The position numbers and the translations under genes are program-made. A stretch of DNA of 63,359 bases, filler included, from Reticulomyxa filosa (Eukaryota > Protista > Foraminifera), in assembly GCA_000512085.1 (NCBI GenBank). It is 19 parts of 19 records of this genome, joined end to end, with 100 filler letters (N's around TTAATTAATTAA, not from the genome) between each part and the next. Parts side by side here need not be neighbours in the genome. Positions count along the whole stretch, not along the records: positions 52,341 to 60,408 come from ASPP01009364.1; 18 more parts are not named here. One strand, given 5' to 3'. Below the pieces are notes generated by a model. The model worked only from the letters and a program-made list of their open reading frames with translations, did not search any database and was not told where the DNA came from. The first letter of the stretch is position 1. Each line of letters begins with the position of its first letter. Below are positions 2,447 to 60,408 of the stretch, one piece after another.

Positions 2447-3238
2447 ATGGCGAACACCGATCCCACAAAGAAGCCCCTTTGCCAGGACGAACTGAACGCG
2501 CGGCTGAAGACGAGCCGCGCCTTCGAGGCCGCGGCCTTCACCTCCGCCGTCACGCTCGACGAACTCGACCTGACGGAATGCCTGTTCACCGATTGCCTGT
2601 TCGATCTGCCGGCCATCCGCGGCGCCGATTTTTCCGGAGCGCAGCTCAAGGGCTGCCGCTTCTCACCCGGTCGGTTCGCCAGTTGCAGGTTCGCCGGTGC
2701 GCGATTGCAGGACATCAACTTCTTCGACGTCGAGCAAAAAAAGGGATGCACTTTCGCCTTCTGCGATCTGCGGGACGTCGAAGCGGAAAAGTGCAACTTC
2801 GCGGTCAACGGCTTCGAACGCTGCGACTTGCACGATTTGCGGGCTCGGGAATGCAGTTTCCGGGGCGTGCGCTTCTACGCCTCAACCTTCACCAGGGCGG
2901 TCTCGAAGCGCGTGATGGTCACGCGGGCGCGTTTCGAGGCCTGCAACTTCACCTTCACGGACTTCTCCGGCGTCTCGCTCGAGAGTTGTGAGTTCCTGAC
3001 CTGCAAGTTTCTCGACACAGCCTTCTTCGACGTCAACCTCACCGACGCAATCCTGCGCGACTGCTCGGTCGACAAGGCCGAATGGGAGCGCGCCAATCTG
3101 ACCCGCACGGATTTTCGCGGCTCGACGATTTCCGGGCTGAACCTCGCCGTGCTGTCCGGCTACGCGGGCCTGATGATCGGTGAAAGCCAGCAGACCGAGC
3201 TTCTCGAAGGACTCGGCGTCTCGGTCAGCCCCGATTGA
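2447..3238 (+). CDS. Bacterial Qnr-like pentapeptide repeat protein (263 aa)
   Basis: Tandem A/C-x-F/L pentapeptides with Qnr-type loop A (FFDVEQKKGC), loop B (FTRAVSKRVMV) and C-terminal helix GLMIGESQQTELLEGLGVSVSPD. ATG at 2447 preferred over 2213, which overlaps the divergent gene. Confidence 0.88.
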   Translation: MANTDPTKKPLCQDELNARLKTSRAFEAAAFTSAVTLDELDLTECLFTDCLFDLPAIRGADFSGAQLKGCRFSPGRFASCRFAGARLQDINFFDVEQKKGCTFAFCDLRDVEAEKCNFAVNGFERCDLHDLRARECSFRGVRFYASTFTRAVSKRVMVTRARFEACNFTFTDFSGVSLESCEFLTCKFLDTAFFDVNLTDAILRDCSVDKAEWERANLTRTDFRGSTISGLNLAVLSGYAGLMIGESQQTELLEGLGVSVSPD

Positions 3239-3386
3239 AAGCTTACACCGGCGGCGGCGTCATCGTTCCCGCCGGCAGCGCGGCGCNNNNNNNNNNNNNN
3301 NNNNNNNNNNNNNNNNNNNNNNNNNNNNNNTTAATTAATTAANNNNNNNNNNNNNNNNNNNNNNNNNNNNNNNNNNNNNNNNNNNN

Positions 3387-52172: not shown

Positions 52173-52536
52173 GTTGAGTTGTTGTTTTTTTTTTTGTTTT
52201 TTTTTTGAGAATCAAAGAAGGAGATGGCAATGCATAAAGCNNNNNNNNNNNNNNNNNNNNNNNNNNNNNNNNNNNNNNNNNNNNTTAATTAATTAANNNN
52301 NNNNNNNNNNNNNNNNNNNNNNNNNNNNNNNNNNNNNNNNAACGTACAGTTTTTTTTGTTTCGAATATAGTTCCTATCAAAATACTGCATTTGTTTCCCC
52401 TTGAAAGCATCACCCAATAATTTCACGTTTCTTATCTTCTCACCTTTTTTTTTTGTTGCAAGTATACCAGTTTTGCACTCGTAAATGTTGCAAGGGCGCT
52501 CGCAAAAAATTTTTTTGAAGAATCAGCATTGAGGAA

Positions 52537-53723
52537 ATGAACAGTATTAAAAAGGAAAGTGAGAATATAACTTCACATTTGGTAATATCTTACCATATAA
52601 ATAAAGATACACTCACCCCATAAACGGACACATAAAAACAAAAAGTCAGAAAAAAAGATAAAAGTAATTCTTCAAAATTGGGTTCGAATTTTGGCTATCA
52701 AATTGGGGTGGGTTTCTGACTTTGACAAAATTGTGATCAGATATGTTAGTAACACGTTTTGTTTTGTGAAAGTTAAATGCAAACGTTTCTTTGACATTAA
52801 ATTATTTATTGAAAATACAGACCAAATGCTTTAAACTATTGAACACATTACAAGGGCATGACGACATGGTAACCGGTGTAAGATTTTCACCAGATGGTCA
52901 CAAGATTGTTTCCTCATCAGCGGATAAAACAATTCGAATTTGGGATGTTGCATCAGGAAAACAAATTCAAAGTTTTCAAGGACATTTGGATTGGATCAAT
53001 GTTACAAGATTTTCACCTGATGGATATACAGTCATTTCATGTTCATGTGACAAAACAATCCGATTATGGGATGTGAAATCAGGAAAAGAAATAATGAGAT
53101 TGGGAGAATATCCGTTTTGGATATTTGATATAAACTTTTCTCCAGATGGCAAATATTTTGTGTCAGGCTCTTCTGATAAAATATTACGAATATGGGATGT
53201 AAATTCTAGAAAAGAGATTAAAAAATTAGAAGGTCATGTGAATGCTATATTGGGTACGCAATTTTCTCCAAATGGCTTAATGATTGTATCGGCATCAGAA
53301 GATAACACAATTGGTATATGGGATGTGCAAACAGGCAAAAGATTGAAGGAATTAATAGGACATACGAATGCTGTAATACGTGCAAAATTTTCTCTAGATA
53401 ATAAATTTGTTGTATCTTGTTCAAAAGATAAAACAATTCGGATTTGGGATGTGGAATTAGGAAAAGAAATACAGAATTTAGGAGGACACTCAGATGTCAT
53501 ATGCGATGTAAAATTCTTTCCAGATGGTCAAACTATTGCGTCATGTTCATCAGATTATACAGTTCGAATATGGGATGTAAAATCAAGAAATGAAATACAA
53601 AAATTGGAAGGACATTCTGATGAAATAAGATGTATGGATATTTCATCCGATGGTAATACTATTGTGTCTGGTTCTTGGGATTATACTATTCGAATCTGGG
53701 GATTACAAAAGGTGAGCAACTAA
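52537..53723 (+). CDS. WD40-repeat protein (7 blades) with N-terminal Trp-helix motif
   Basis: Exons 52537-52581, 52646-52744 and 52821-53723; GH..V...FSPDG..IVS.S.D.TIRIWD repeats. Confidence 0.93.
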
Positions 53724-54328
53724 AAAAAACAATACTAAATACTTTTTTTTTCAAATACATACTTTGTTTTATTTTATTGCAGACAACCTTAGCATTTTAA
53801 AAAAAGCATTATTTTTATCAAATAAAAAATATTCATCAAGTTTTATTTCCATCTCATATCCTCCAACATTGTATTTTTTTAATCAAAAAAATAAAATTAT
53901 ATTTTCATCTCTGAATAATTTAAAAAAAGAAAATAGCCAAAATAATATTGAATTACTATTGCAATGAAAAACACTCGTAAGCAATATAAATGATCAGTTT
54001 TCTTTTTTTTGGGATGAAGCTGTTCATTGAACAATATTGGAATTTTTGGCTGAAGTCGGACAGCAAGCGTTCATTTGAGTCAATAAACAAAGAGCAAATG
54101 AAAGAGTTTCAATAATTTTTGTACATCTTTGTACATATTTTGTACAGGTAATTATCGAAATTAAAAAAAGATTTAAAATCGCAAAAAAGAAATAAAGAAC
54201 AAAAAAAAACAAGAATAGAAGCGTACTCACAATATCCAAAAGAGACCTTCCCTTTCTCTCCCCATTCCCCTCCTTCCGCCCCCCTCCGCGGCTCTTTGGA
54301 TATCATTTTCGCTGTAAAATGTTATATG

Positions 54329-57300
54329 TTACATGAAAGCTCGTAGTAACAAACAAGCGAACAAAATGGACAAGTTCACATGTACAGAGACCGAAAATCC
54401 TGCGGACACCGTCGTTTTGGTAAACATATAAGTGCCTTGGCATGTTTGATCGTGTTTAAGGCTAAAGCCTGAAAAATCACATTCATACATTCAATATACA
54501 GCACATATATGTATACATATATATTTATGTATGTGTGTAAGTTCCTTTTAATGATACAAACTTGTACTACTAATACAGTGCAACGACGTTACAAACCTGG
54601 ATCAATATTATCTTTGAACGCCGCAATAAATGAATACGGAGTGCGCTGATGAAGCATAGGTAAAGGACTTGGCATAAACTGCAAGAACTTTGCGTCCAAA
54701 AAGGCCCGAGATCTCTTGGGTATGAATGTACTTGTACAATTGGCTCGAACTTTTCCATCGTGTGCGGTCACATTTCCACAGTCTAACAGCTGCACAATGT
54801 TATGCTGTCCCTTTTGTGGCAAATAATACAAAGCAAAGGTCCAATGCGAGATCAGATTTGTGCCAACAATGCCCACTCCCGTCATCGATAAGTCTCCACT
54901 AACATGATAATTACCAAAGAATGCCACTCCAAACCAACCCTTTGTTGCAGGTCCTTCAATAGAATACTTTACGGTGCAGTTGTTTCCGTCAATTACCAAT
55001 CGAAAGGAAATATTTGCATTGTCACAGTCAGACAAGCTCTTCACCTCACTTGTCCACATTTCATTTTTCTTAATGCCCAACATGCTGCACGCAGAGTTGT
55101 TGAATGCAACGCGGCTCACTTTTTGCGCGTTAAATGCAATTTTCAATCCTTTCTTGCACGCGTCGCGACTATTTGCAACAAAGAACTTGGTGCCCGCGGG
55201 CTCGACAATCGGGAAGCTGCTATAGCACTTTGTCGAAATGTTGCAATTCTTCCAACTCTCGTAGTCATCCACCAAACATCCCGTCAACGAACCATCGCAC
55301 GACGTGAAATCCACTTGTTCCAAATCCGACACGTTATATATTTTATTGAACAAGTTCTGTCTTAAAGACAAAAACGACTCGTTTAGAGGAATTACAATCT
55401 ATTACGTATACATCTAAAGCGTTACTTTTTTTTTTTTAAGAGATAAATAAATATTATATATACGTATATGTATGTATACGTATATATGTATATATGCATA
55501 TATATAATAACATGGCCTTGTTCTGGACTGACAAATACAGAGCTTGTATTCCCAAAGATATTGCCACTAAAGCCTTGCAAAGCATTTTGGTCCAAATAAA
55601 AGTGGACAAGGGAGGTCATTCCGTCGATTGCAAAGGTATTTCTGGCGTGTTTGGCCAGCACGTAAGGGGCATAATCTTCCTGTTTGCCCTGGCTGTAAGC
55701 GCCCTTCAAGAACGCGTCACTAAAGACCAATTGCGCCACCTGCACGTTCGACGTCTCTCCAATGGTCAGCGTTTCAAATTGCAGCGTGTTCACGTCCACT
55801 TCGACATCTCGGTTGTATTGACTGTGCAGCGTTATCGTGGTAGCCCTGTCGGTCTTGTTTATCAGCTCTATGCGCACTCCGTCGTTGGCAAGAGAGTCGG
55901 TTCCTTTTTTTTTTTTTTTTACTTGTTTTTTATTTTTTTTTAAAAAAACAAAACAAAACAAAAAAAAAAAAAAACCTAAAGATAAAGCTGATGTCGCCTC
56001 CAACGCTAAGATTTAAATACTGAGGACCCCAATAGAAGCGATACGTGTCATTGCCTTTGTATTGATAAATGATGGCAGGATGAGGGAGGGTAATCGCAGG
56101 ACCATTGGCACTGACAACAAAGTCCACGTCCACGAGGTTGTCAATAGCAAAGCCATTGGGCAGGTCGTCGGTAATGTCGATGCGATGCAAGAACTTGTCG
56201 ACATTGTTCTGGAACATGCGAGACCCCAGCTTGGTGAATGATCCCGTGGTAAGCACGGTCGCACTGTTGTAGCGACGGACTGTGTAGGAAATGGTATACG
56301 TGATATTCGAGCTGATCAAATACCACCCCAATAACAGTCGCTCCGAGTTGTGCGTCTTTCCGTTCAAATACGTTGCCAAGTCCTCCACGCTGTCAAAGTT
56401 TCCAAAGAACTTCTCTGGGTAAGGGTCGTACGCATAGTTCATGGCTGACCAGTTCATTGAATCAAATGAACTTCCACCGTATTTCAATGTGATTGGATCA
56501 GCATTTACCAACTCTCTGTTGCCTTTATTATTATTTGTTATCATTTGTTATAATTTGTTATAATTATTATTAAAAAAAAAAAAAAAGTAGATATATTTAA
56601 GTAAATCATTTCAGTCACTAAAAAAAGTATAGTTAGCAACTTAACCAACAAACGGACGAAGTGGTTCATCCAAATGGTAATAACTGACAAAGCATCCCAA
56701 ATACTGGGCAATCTGTGGAGAGCCTGTTTGGTACGAAATACCGCGATATTCGACTAACTGTTGCCATATCAAAAAGTACCTCTCCACTCCCATGTGATGC
56801 AACATAAACATCGGGTCGAATGTCGTCGTTTCGAGATCGATGAATGACCCTCCAACCATGTTGTGGACATTGTTATGAGGAACTTCAAACCTGTTTTGTT
56901 TGTTTGTTTTTTAACTTTTTTTTTTTTTTTAAACAAAACAAAAAAAAAATTGAGCCTAAACAACCTTTCTCACGTATACGTGTGTTGTTGCAACTCGTAT
57001 TACACATAAAAAAAAAAATAAAAAAAAATAAATAAAGACATGTAATTAAAAATAATCCAATTATCAAATTCGAAAGCTTGGAGCACTTGCTTAAAAAAAG
57101 AAAAGCTGCTACCCATCCTCGTGGCATTAAAAAAATTGGAAGCAGGATTTCGACACGTGTAGTTACAATTGTAGCCGGCGGTGAGGCCACTAGTGATCTT
57201 GACCACATCTTCAGGAATGCGATAGTTCCACCAGGGATTTCTGTATGTCTTGTTTCCCACGGTAAAGGTCAGTCTTGTGGCCAAATCAGGAAAAGACGTG

Positions 57301-58014
57301 AGGTTGGAATTGGCCCAATTCCAGTACGGCACTGCCAAACTCAGATTCCATCGGCGCAATGCGTTTTCAAACTGCAGCAGTCCTAACCGATGCCATGTTG
57401 GAAAACGTGGGTCACTGTGGAGACAACATGATGCATTTCTCTCATTGAAATCGTCTGTGATCAAATAAAAATCCACATGGTTTTTTTTTTATGTATACAC
57501 TTTTTTTTTACGTATACACATTTTTTTGTTACCATAGCAATCTTGAAACCAATCAGGAGCACCATGAAAAGTTGCCACGTAAGGCCAAGTGTTATTTTTG
57601 TATGCAATTTTTCGTTCATCTTGTTGCTGGGCGCAAGCCAATGCTTTCATTAAATTTATTTTTTCATCTTCCGTTATGTATTCCACATTTTTGCGAACTC
57701 GATTGCCTACTCAGCAAAAAAAAAAAATAAAGTTTGTAACGTATACCTTTTTTTTTTTTTTTGAACAATGCGAGTAATCAAAAAAAAAAAACAAAACCTG
57801 ATGCTGCCTCTACGACACTGTACGGTGGAACTCCTCCAAAACAATCGTCATACACTGCCGCGTTGTTCCAAATCTGAAAGTGGTTTGTGTCAATTTGACA
57901 ATGTCCAGGAGCAAACGCTGAGGTAGCCCAGTACGCACAATGAGTGTCATTATTTCCGTTTGACAAGCCAAAATTTGCAAGCAAACAAAGCCAAAAAATC
58001 TCTTTCCACTTCAT
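54329..58014 (-). CDS. Secreted or GPI-anchored haemocyanin/tyrosinase-like type-3 copper protein with cupredoxin-like and DOMON domains (~976 aa)
   Basis: Eight exons: 58014-57798, 57706-57533, 57454-57040, 56890-56646, 56522-55976, 55903-55512, 55398-54597, 54468-54329. CuA: FHGAP..CCLH..FPTWHR. CuB: FEVPHNNVH..DPMFMLHH. The exon 5/6 junction needs one base removed (T-run near 55979). Confidence 0.9.
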
Positions 58015-58485
58015 TTTTTACACGATCAGCAAAAAAAAACGTTAAAACGACAATCAAACGTAGCTTTTTTCTTTCACGTCTTCTTTGTGAGTGGCTTGTT
58101 TTCGGTTCAACACGTTGCCACCACAAGTTTTCTTTGTGTTTTTAGACAAAATTATGTTGCAATATTGAACAATTTGTTTAGTAAAAAGTGAGATTTTACA
58201 GTGCAAAGTTTTGAAATAATCCATTTTTTAATGTTTTAAAGCAACATCATTCAAAAATAAGATTTGTAATCATTTCTTAAAAGAATAAAAAAGCACAAAT
58301 AAAAATATTTCTCGTGCTTGTGACAAAATTATTGGCGATTATTTTGTTTAGCTCAGAAATGCTTTTCTGCACAACTTGGAAAAATTTTCACCACAATGCA
58401 GTAGTTCAGCAAAAACAAAAAAAAAGTGTTTACAAACTTCAAAAATTTGTTTTCGAATCATCATCTTTCTTCAAATAAAAAAGAA

Positions 58486-59651
58486 ATGGACATGATTATC
58501 AATGAAATGGCTGCCACAAAACTACAATTGGTAAGCTTCCTTAAAATCTTTCGTTACGATACGAATAAAAAAAAAACAACTTTTTGTTTGCGATAAACCA
58601 GCCAAAAAAATGTGTAAAAGTAATAATTAAAAATTGGGCTCGAATATTCAATGATAAATTAGGATGGATTGATGACTTTGTTAAAATCATCATGAAATAT
58701 GTTACGTTACTTATTTTTTTACTTTGCAAGTAAATTAAATATGTTTATTAATAAGCAAACATCTAAATATAGATCGGAGTTCAATTATTGAAGATTTTAC
58801 AAGGACATGTAGGTCCAGTAAAAAGTGTAAGATTTTCATCTGATGGTCATAAAATTGTTTCGTCGTCAAATGATAGAACAGTTCGAATATGGGATGTTGA
58901 ATCTGGAAAATTAATACAAACTTTTAATGGACATACTGATTGGGTTAATGCAGCAGAATTTTTATTGGATGGAAATACTATTATTTCATGTTCAGATGAT
59001 ATAACAATTCGATTATGGGATATGATATCGGGAAAAGAATTGATAAAAATTCAAGGACATGGAAATGTAGTACGTGATTTACATATTTCTCCAGATGGAA
59101 AATATATTGTATCTAGTTCAGATGATGGAACAATAAGATTATGGGATGTAGATTCTGGGCAAGAGATAAAACGTATGGTGGATCATTCGATGAGTGTATT
59201 AAATTCACAATTTTCAGTAGATGGTCAAAAAATTGTATCATCATCTGCCGATGAAACAATTGATTTATGGGATGTAAAGTCAGGTGAAAGATTAAAACAA
59301 TTAAAAGGGCATTCAGATTATGTAACTCGTGCAAAATTTTCTCCAGATGATAAATATATTGTATCTTGTTCATGGGATAAAACAATTCGAATATGGGATA
59401 TATTAACAGGAAAGGAAATAAAAATTTTGGAAGGACACATATTCTTTGTGAATGATATAAAATATTTTCCAGACGGTCAAACTATTGTATCTTGTTCAGA
59501 TGACAAGACAATTAGATTGTGGAATGTGAAATCAGGTCATGAAATACAGAAATTGAATGTATATTCTACTGTATCAGGAATTGACATTTCACCAGATGGT
59601 AATACAATTGCATCCGCTTCTCAGGATTGTTTGATCCGAATTTGGGAATGA
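58486..59651 (+). CDS. WD40-repeat protein (7 blades), paralog of 52537-53723
   Basis: Exons 58486-58530, 58602-58700 and 58773-59651; same 45-nt and 99-nt first exons and same repeat pattern. Confidence 0.93.
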
Positions 59652-60321
59652 TACAATCATATATCTTTTTTAATCAAAATTCTGTTTTGAATTGTTTTGT
59701 ACATCTTTTTCAATTTTTCTTTTGAAATATGAAAATGGAATTAAATTCTGCATTCTTTGGAATATTGATAACGTAACTTTTTACTGTATCTAGTCTAGGG
59801 GCAAAACGCAAAACACTCGAATGTGGATAGCAATCACATTGAGGCATTTTTTGGTTAATTATCAATTCCATTGGTTTTAAAAATACCAATTGGATGACTT
59901 GTTCAAATATGTATCTATACTGCCAGTTTTTGCTGGCAATGTGCTTATAAAGTGTGAACAATGTACTGAATTTTGATTTAAGTAAGTTTGGAATGTTTGT
60001 GCAATGTACAGACGTAGAGTTGATTTGTTACATAATTATAAGCAACAACATCTTTTTTTAAATAAACAAAAGTACTATATCCATAGGTTCAGAAAGAAAC
60101 ACATGTACGACACTTTTTAAAAGTTATTTTTATCAAATATACAAATAAAAATCCAATAAATTTATTCTCTTTTTGAAATTGAGTTAAATCTAGTGAACAG
60201 CTTTGTGAACATTGTATTACATAATGGCATGATTAAGACTATTTTGAAAGCGTAGAATGTTTGTAATACAGTAGGTGCAAAGAAAACTGAACGCCTAAAA
60301 CATATCTTATGATGATAATTG

Positions 60322-60408
60322 ATTTTCTCAATGAAAAATCAACATTTAGACCTAATTTTTTTTTAAAAAAATATCTACAAGTCTTGTAGTTTTTAAATAT
60401 GATATTGA
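60322..60408 (-). repeat. Inverted copy of 14777-14862 at a contig end
   Basis: Direct sequence comparison; contains CTACAAGTCTTGTAG. Confidence 0.9.

Follow-up and report, generated by a model that had tools for sequence, protein, structure and literature searches.

A Reticulomyxa filosa gene joining a mollusc-type haemocyanin unit to phytocyanin-like and probable DOMON-like domains in a predicted lipid-anchored surface protein

Our analysis of a gene from the freshwater foraminifer Reticulomyxa filosa (PMC7744380) revealed a haemocyanin-type copper unit, a family-specific middle domain, a phytocyanin-like domain without copper ligands and a DOMON-like domain, all encoded in a single polypeptide. 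The gene lies on the 8068-nt contig ASPP01009364.1 of assembly GCA_000512085.1 (L003), which occupies positions 52341-60408 of the window, the whole stretch of 63,359 nucleotides that was analysed. On the minus strand, from 58014 to 54329, splice sites and phases read from the sequence define one gene of eight exons, whose GC-richer blocks stand out from AT-rich surroundings (intergenic GC 0.24-0.33). All seven introns follow the GT-AG rule, measure 72-149 nt and have a GC content of 0.10-0.28, as against 0.37-0.49 in the exons. Exon 1 (57798..58014) opens with the start codon at 58014 and ends in phase 1. Exon 2 (57533..57706), flanked by GT-AG introns, carries the first part of the type-3 copper domain, exon 3 (57040..57454) the CuA site, exon 4 (56646..56890) the CuB site, and exon 5 (55976..56522) the end of the alpha domain together with a haemocyanin beta-sandwich. 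Exon 6 (55512..55903) encodes the middle domain of about 130 residues. Exon 7 (54597..55398) comprises the phytocyanin-like, that is cupredoxin-type, domain of about 93 residues (55120..55398) followed by a DOMON-like beta-sandwich domain (54597..55077), and exon 8 (54329..54468) supplies the last DOMON-like strand and a glycosylphosphatidylinositol (GPI)-type signal before the stop codon at 54331-54329.

The C-terminal module of this gene is exceedingly scarce. An exhaustive phmmer search with exon 7 as query, covering 1.84 billion cluster representatives, recovered three proteins that carry it, so that the architecture, which the preliminary description of this locus had not recognised from elsewhere, proves to be very rare (three clusters). 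One of them, P0001 (604 aa), is the GenBank model of the locus itself. P0002 (830 aa, 42% identical) comes from a paralog on ASPP01009728.1 of the same assembly (L002), a contig cut at its 5′ end that leaves the paralog's N-terminus outside the record. P0003 (1092 aa, 29% identical) is an uninterrupted open reading frame (ORF) on a 3571-nt contig from run SRR14325534 (L001), which we take for a transcript given its AT-rich untranslated ends and an adapter remnant; this Illumina remnant (GTGTGCTCTTCCGATCT) fills positions 1-17, and the 5′ end of the record is therefore not biological. Word-based protein searches returned no match for exon 7 and only P0003 itself for P0003 residues 600-1092 and, at E<=1e-5, for residues 70-590.

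Both relatives demonstrate that the 5′ and 3′ halves of the gene belong together. Exons 2-7 are colinear on P0003 (residues 76-132, 134-277, 284-350, 371-582, ~701-715 and 768-1004, respectively; exon 2 matches residues 76-132 with 47% identity and E 9e-15 in blastp), and exons 3-7 are colinear on P0002 (1-113, 133-212, 219-398, 411-531 and 557-808). Colinearity on the two proteins places the halves in one polypeptide, as does the intron-free 1092-aa ORF of P0003, which has the same domain order as the locus gene, with its own leader and hydrophobic C-terminus. The single fused gene of the preliminary description thus holds. The public annotation of ASPP01009364.1 has two genes instead, a 399-aa tyrosinase and a 604-aa protein, and a frame break does fall between the two parts. 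However, the 604-aa model starts at an ATG within intron 4 (MITNNNK..., 56544), lacks a leader and translates homopolymer sequence from parts of introns 5 and 6, and the division separates the alpha domain of the haemocyanin unit from the beta-sandwich, whereas P0003 and P0002 each contain both halves in one product. We consider two separate genes extremely improbable; judged from the sequence, the GenBank split is an artefact of annotation. Likewise dismissed was a mini-intron of the GenBank model (RFFFFFVLF-LKKKKK), which results from forcing a frame across homopolymers. The public model of the paralog (L002:140-3034) also includes intron sequence, for example SLFKQKKKKKQLINNKL, GSLCACSCQQ and VIKKKKCFKN, and is without its last exon (about L002:3057-3196).

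The relatives also help to place several exon borders. The exon 1/2 junction, VVEAAS-G-NRVRKNV, parallels P0003 residues ~70-85. The exon 6/7 junction was set by the paralog, with a donor at 55511 (SPEQGH|GT) and an acceptor at 55400-55399, both in phase 0; the resulting N-terminus of exon 7, IVIPLNESFL..., aligns with AVVPLDRELL... in the paralog. The earlier placement of the exon 7 start at about 55360 is corrected to 55398 by this acceptor, its phase and the paralog match, and the acceptor at 55362-55361 is discarded. The exon 7/8 junction fits in phase 1. Skipping of exon 6, which would join the phase-2 end of exon 5 in frame to the AG at 55362-55361, was rejected given the conservation of exon 6 in both relatives and the phase-0 acceptor at 55400-55399, and with it fell the idea that the end of exon 5 forms the first half of a cupredoxin fold.

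One junction does not fit. The eight exon lengths total 2932 nt, or 3n+1, and the 1-nt phase problem at 55976/55903 that had been suspected is real: exon 5 ends in phase 2, and phase 1 is needed. In the paralog, exon 5 ends ATC ATC TTA G|GTTCTC, in phase 1, and exon 6 begins AAATAG|GAACCGAG; at the locus the corresponding sequences are ATC TTT AG|GTTTTT and AAAAAG|GAACCGAC. The exon 6 acceptor (AG|GAACCGA), which the paralog shares, requires phase 1, and the last exon 5 codon contains one extra T (TTT at 55980-55978, versus TT in the paralog). An alternative phase-1 donor at 56027 (GTCCTC) was rejected, as it would remove GPQYLNLSVGGDISFIF, residues that the paralog conserves. Two origins come into question for the surplus T: an assembly error of one base, next to a run of 13 T, or a true frameshift. 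If it is real, the locus copy is broken, and the function would fall to the paralog or paralogs; such a pseudogene would make only the copper unit (exons 1-5) with a short out-of-frame tail, and the full architecture would be functional only in paralogs. The exon sum, the TTT AG|GT at the locus in place of TTA G|GT, and the fact that the sole canonical donor beyond the conserved ...ISFIF lies in phase 2 all speak for this possibility. On the other hand, exons 6, 7 and 8 (130, 267 and 45 codons) are all open despite the AT-rich genome and share 34-45% identity with the paralog, every splice site is intact, and single-base errors in T runs, here next to the 13-T homopolymer, are a common artefact of fragmented draft assemblies. 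Because exons 6-8 are open and conserved, we favour an error in the assembly or a lesion that arose very recently, and decay of the locus copy into a pseudogene appears rather unlikely. Intron 5 (55904-55975, minus strand; GC 0.10) consists almost entirely of a T run, short GTTTT repeats and an A run, and intron 6 (55440-55510, minus strand) contains a microsatellite of the (TATACA/TATATA) type. Homopolymers border several exons and are the likely cause of the trouble in both assembly and annotation.

Exons 2-5 encode the haemocyanin-type type-3 copper unit that had been proposed for this locus. Exons were searched one by one, unjoined, with the uninterrupted ORF of P0003 serving as a proxy for parts that cross exon borders. 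Exons 3 and 4 match the Pfam Tyrosinase family (PF00264) with E values of 2.4e-13 (51.4 bits) and 4.6e-13 (50.5 bits, profile positions 173-213), respectively, against a cut-off of 22.6. A motif match to PROSITE-type patterns located all six copper-ligand histidines, three for CuA and three for CuB. The first CuA histidine lies in FHGAP (57566-57564, exon 2), and the H-x4-F-P-x-W-H-R motif (HSDPRFPTWHR, H-x8-H) occupies 57419-57366 in exon 3, immediately preceded by the Cys of a C-x-H, thioether-type element. CuB is formed by HNNVH (56877-56863) and DPMFMLHH (56817-56794) in exon 4. At 57329-57315, exon 3 also encodes PYWNW, the counterpart of the PYWDW motif of mollusc haemocyanins (PMC6992001).

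The best matches of exon 3 in the PDB are mollusc haemocyanins, ranking above bacterial and fungal tyrosinases, and the first 400 residues of the paralog align with single functional units along almost their whole length (e.g., 1lnl 156-405 of 408, E 3e-18). Exon 5 alone has no match in Pfam, and the paralog, 49% identical to it, matches the haemocyanin beta-sandwich family Haemocyan_bet_s (PF14830) with E 1.1e-6 and 29.1 bits (cut-off 24). A three-row profile of exon 5, the paralog and P0003 retrieved only mollusc haemocyanin units from the PDB and extends to their C-terminal end (1lnl 260-405 of 408, E 3.7e-6). The PDB matches, the Haemocyan_bet_s match and the exon 5 profile together confirm, at the level of sequence, that exons 2-5 constitute a complete mollusc-type haemocyanin functional unit with tyrosinase domain and beta-sandwich, present as a single unit: no tandem array of seven to eight units occurs in the locus gene, the paralog or P0003, each of which has one per polypeptide.

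Could this unit bind or sense oxygen rather than act as an oxidase, with the beta-sandwich permanently blocking access of substrates? The completeness of the unit, its beta-sandwich cap, the PYWNW motif and the C-x-H element are shared with the mollusc carriers (PMC6992001) and would suit such a role. However, a single membrane-tethered unit in a single-celled organism would serve no circulatory need, and latent phenoloxidase activity has been reported for haemocyanin units (PMC4041863). A pure oxygen binder seems very unlikely.

The middle domain encoded by exon 6 is specific to this family. Its 130 residues include no cysteine, are 40% identical to P0002 411-531 (E 1.6e-26) and can be aligned with P0003 590-745; the motif DQ..QGF.G.IF is invariant among the relatives. 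Neither exon 6 in Pfam nor a profile of the domain in the PDB found a match.

The first part of exon 7 is phytocyanin-like. A family profile (A1) built from a three-row alignment of the locus, P0002 and P0003 yielded five matches in the PDB, all phytocyanins and nothing else: cucumber basic protein (E 0.001), stellacyanin (0.0023) and mavicyanin (0.019), followed more weakly by umecyanin (0.15) and plantacyanin (0.8). The locus sequence alone matches cucumber basic protein (2cbp) with E 0.3. In Pfam, P0003:735-860 matches Cu_bind_like (PF02298) with E 0.0047 and 17.3 bits, under the cut-off of 20.8, and Ephrin with E 0.15. In the alignment to 2cbp, the copper ligands H39, C79, H84 and M89 face T, A, A and L at the locus, and in the paralog all are non-ligands save the last, a Met; the disulfide pair C52/C85 faces two cysteines that are invariant in all three relatives. 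The sequence comparisons thus support assignment of this region as a phytocyanin-like domain in which none of the four copper ligands is retained. The preliminary description had pictured a copper-free phytocyanin-like fold resembling the tail of the haemocyanin functional unit h (FU-h); the copper-free phytocyanin likeness is borne out, and the FU-h tail is not among the matches.

What fold does the remainder of exon 7 adopt? The sequence motifs on which the DOMON proposal had been built (GWFGVAF, SMTG and FIAAF, together with YESWKNC...LKIAF in the preceding domain) all occur in the ORF at 54589..55371, which corresponds to exon 7. Two elements, GW..A..G.Y and M.G..IV, are invariant among the relatives (alignments A1/A3) and appear to resemble the DOMON core. 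Language-model features of the locus exon 7 have DOMON/Skeletor clusters as their nearest neighbours (0.77, a lead only), and those of the homologous part of P0003 reach 0.93 with 189 shared features in PF03351; 27 of the 30 matches in the P0003 feature search fall in PF03351, with AIR12-type DUF568 clusters next. An AlphaFold model of P0003 855-1055 was built from a three-row alignment with no templates and no DOMON sequences, the short rows of the last exon, which misalign, being left out. In an exhaustive fold search of 48,161 chains with this model, seven of the top ten belong to the DOMON superfamily (1d7c, 6jt6, 4zel, 4qi6, 4qi3, 1i82 and 2ivf_C, at ranks 1, 3, 4, 5, 6, 7 and 10, with Z 3.6-4.8). 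In order of rank they represent the cytochrome domains of cellobiose dehydrogenase (CDH) and pyranose dehydrogenase, dopamine beta-hydroxylase, two more entries for CDH, CBM9 and the ethylbenzene dehydrogenase haem subunit, and the highest Foldseek probability, 0.69, also went to CDH. A single-sequence AlphaFold model of exon 7 (predicted local distance difference test score, pLDDT, of 35), for which the fold search gave unrelated hits, served as a control. A DOMON-superfamily fold is, according to the model and the features, quite likely.

DOMON domains bind haem or sugars, and those of the cytochrome type hold haem b through a Met/His pair, such as M90/H174 in HYP1 (PMC10784544). At the locus, the candidate haem Met (codon 54885-54883) is invariant in all three sequences, and the candidate His (54454-54452), in the FSLKH of exon 8, has a counterpart in the paralog (FSQRH), with a His standing two positions further on in P0003. 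The Met-His spacings are 101 and 106 residues, compared with 84 in HYP1. The pLDDT at the candidate His is below 30, and hence the Met/His geometry is unreadable from the model. To judge from these residues, binding of haem b by the DOMON-like domain is conceivable, and we hold it somewhat less probable than its absence.

A different role for this domain deserves consideration. DOMON-like modules may bind sugars instead of haem (PMC10784544), and the domain could be a ligand- or sugar-binding or a purely structural module, for which CBM9-type relatives and many DOMON proteins of animals are precedents. With the exon 6 and cupredoxin-like domains it would then form a stalk or adhesion region, without haem or relay, by which a conventional phenoloxidase is kept at the membrane or bound to secreted matrix. 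In keeping with this, CBM9 (1i82) and a putative carbohydrate-binding protein (4jpq) match the scores of the cytochrome domains in the fold search, the adjacent cupredoxin-like domain is already without a metal site, the His is not strictly aligned in P0003, and the chemistry of a tyrosinase requires no electron partner. Yet the Met of M.G..IV is invariant in the three relatives, a His follows about 100 residues downstream in each of them, a distance comparable to the 84 residues of HYP1, and the best feature matches are PF03351 and the AIR12-type DUF568 clusters rather than CBM9. We regard a non-redox module as somewhat unlikely.

Targeting signals are found at both ends of the protein. At the start of exon 1, a short run of basic residues leads into a hydrophobic core of 12 residues (leader ~58014-57955; hydropathy peak 2.1 at residues 5-13), followed by an N-terminal stretch with four cysteines; P0003 has a stronger leader. 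The eight exons contain 23 N-x-S/T sequons, 22 plus an NES in the 13 residues that exon 7 gains from its corrected start. At the other end, exon 8 (FSLKH...VSAG...tail...stop) encodes a candidate omega site S-A-G (54406-54398), an 8-aa spacer and a 14-aa hydrophobic end (54373-54332) directly before the stop. The exon is conserved in the paralog (L002:3059-3193: FSQRH, GTY.FT, SGA and the hydrophobic end), whose tail likewise has S-G-A, an 8-aa spacer and a 14-aa hydrophobic end; in P0003, an acidic linker is followed by a hydrophobic end of 18-19 residues. The leader, the many sequons, the last exon with its hydrophobic tail and, by rule of thumb, the GPI-like end were thus correctly anticipated in the preliminary description. 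We infer the layout of a classical GPI signal in all three relatives, and the product, of about 976 residues, is probably secreted, heavily N-glycosylated and tethered to the membrane. Just past the stop, at 54200-54310 (minus strand), lies a G-rich purine tract (GGAGGGGGGCGGAAGGAGGGGAATGGGGAGAG...), and the paralog's stop is likewise followed by a GA-rich tract (L002 ~3205-3260). Such a tract could represent either a 3′ element under conservation or just a simple repeat.

Taken as a whole, the gene probably encodes a single surface protein composed of a leader, a haemocyanin-type unit, the domain of about 130 residues, a copper-less phytocyanin-like domain, a DOMON-like domain and a GPI-type signal, and we propose the following model for its function. 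Judging by the families involved, the protein would enter the secretory pathway, become glycosylated, receive a GPI anchor and reach the outer face of the plasma membrane. There, the haemocyanin-type unit would oxidise phenolics or catechols with O2, possibly kept latent by its beta-sandwich, as in haemocyanins. Such an activity could cross-link or tan secreted organic material, for example cyst or surface coats. The DOMON-like domain may bind haem b via the Met and the C-terminal His some 100 residues away, and the haem would then exchange electrons with the copper pair, for instance by re-reducing the resting met form, or with external acceptors. This haem and electron-relay part, taken alone, is tentative; on balance we doubt it. 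One may further speculate that a haem-b DOMON cytochrome and a binuclear copper site in one GPI-anchored chain make up a self-contained extracellular redox enzyme of a new kind, in which the haem supplies or withdraws electrons at the Cu2-O2 site, for example with ascorbate or a surface reductase driving activation of the met form, as an intramolecular counterpart of the transfer from the CDH cytochrome to lytic polysaccharide monooxygenase (LPMO), but we consider this fullest version of the model rather unlikely.

Several observations weigh against the favoured architecture and its redox interpretation. The DOMON family of Pfam was matched neither by whole proteins (E<=1) nor by isolated domains (E<=10) of the three relatives, and the PDB search with profile A1 returned no DOMON chains; of the DOMON proposal, then, the motifs and the Met stand and the fold is probable from the features and the fold search, without a family match in Pfam. 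The P0003 model is of low confidence (pLDDT 46), the control model obtained equal Z scores with unrelated folds (fold-search Z <=4.8), and a protein shape search with the three-row model returned noise. In P0003 the candidate His is shifted by two positions. The leader and the GPI signal were judged by hand rules, not by dedicated predictors, and in the assembly exon 5 does not join exon 6 in frame. Finally, tyrosinases oxidise diphenols without an external electron donor, and an electron relay is therefore not required.

The copper gene is flanked, on the opposite strand, by two intron-poor genes for seven-blade WD40 proteins (52791-53723 and 58788-59651, plus strand; Pfam) with a mutual identity of 57%. 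A short ORF lies ahead of each (52691-52834 and 58584-58733), and the two ORFs have the motif KLGW(V/I).DF.KI(V/I) in common; within this gene family they probably represent an upstream exon.

What is the relevance of this unusual combination? Our literature search found no tyrosinase-DOMON protein and no foraminiferal haemocyanin-type protein. The novelty lies in the combination of domains within a very small family; the parts are each known, and the sequences are public as split models labelled 'hypothetical'. The public annotation of the locus is wrong in dividing one gene in two and in including introns in the models. Finding a complete haemocyanin unit, beta-sandwich included, in a rhizarian is relevant to how mollusc haemocyanin originated; the unit may be ancient or horizontally moved, and if the protein is indeed a self-contained enzyme, a complete 'molluscan' haemocyanin unit would exist outside animals. 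Should haem be bound, the protein would be the first case of a cytochrome built into a binuclear-copper oxidase and would offer a test bed for extracellular reduction of resting (met) tyrosinase-type sites. A dopachrome-converting, yellow-type protein of R. filosa groups with animal sequences, for which horizontal transfer was raised in 2019 (PMC6678240). Together with the animal-like haemocyanin unit, it hints at a melanin or quinone-tanning toolkit in this organism.

Among known proteins, the mollusc functional unit KLH1-h (FU-h; PDB 3L6W/3QJO) is closest in plan. It shares the six-His tyrosinase-type alpha domain, the C-x-H element, PYW.W and the beta-sandwich, after which it carries a copper-free cupredoxin-like extra domain (PMC6992001). 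In contrast to the mollusc string of seven to eight units, the foraminifer protein has a single unit, places a domain of about 130 residues between beta-sandwich and cupredoxin-like domain, adds a DOMON-like domain and a putative lipid-anchor signal, and belongs to a non-animal host. Moreover, the KLH1-h tail (3l6w) has no detectable sequence match to the foraminifer domain, which matches plant phytocyanins instead. With phytocyanins, early-nodulin-like proteins and ephrins this domain shares, at the profile level, the C-terminal two thirds of the fold and the conserved disulfide, and copper-less GPI-anchored relatives of phytocyanins exist; unlike phytocyanins, it forms part of a larger protein and has had its four ligands replaced.

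For the C-terminal part, AIR12 is a lone DOMON cytochrome on a GPI anchor (PMC10784544). Its extracellular, GPI-tethered DOMON module with proposed Met/His haem ligands parallels the arrangement predicted here, and AIR12/DUF568 clusters are among the nearest feature matches of P0003, but it lacks a sequence-profile match, and here the DOMON-like module is the tail of a type-3 copper protein. The cytochrome domains of CDH and pyranose dehydrogenase (1D7C, 4QI3 and 6JT6; Z 4.8, 4.5 and 4.0) are the top neighbours of the low-confidence model. The CDH cytochrome domain is an electron donor to copper LPMOs, and this haem b sandwich offers a functional analogy, although these fungal, secreted proteins are fused to a flavin dehydrogenase and not to a copper domain. 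Dopamine beta-hydroxylase and MOXD1 differ in their mononuclear type-2 CuH/CuM sites, the N-terminal position of the DOMON domain and the absence of haem, but, like the protein proposed here, they combine DOMON and an O2-activating copper enzyme in one chain (4ZEL, Z 4.0).

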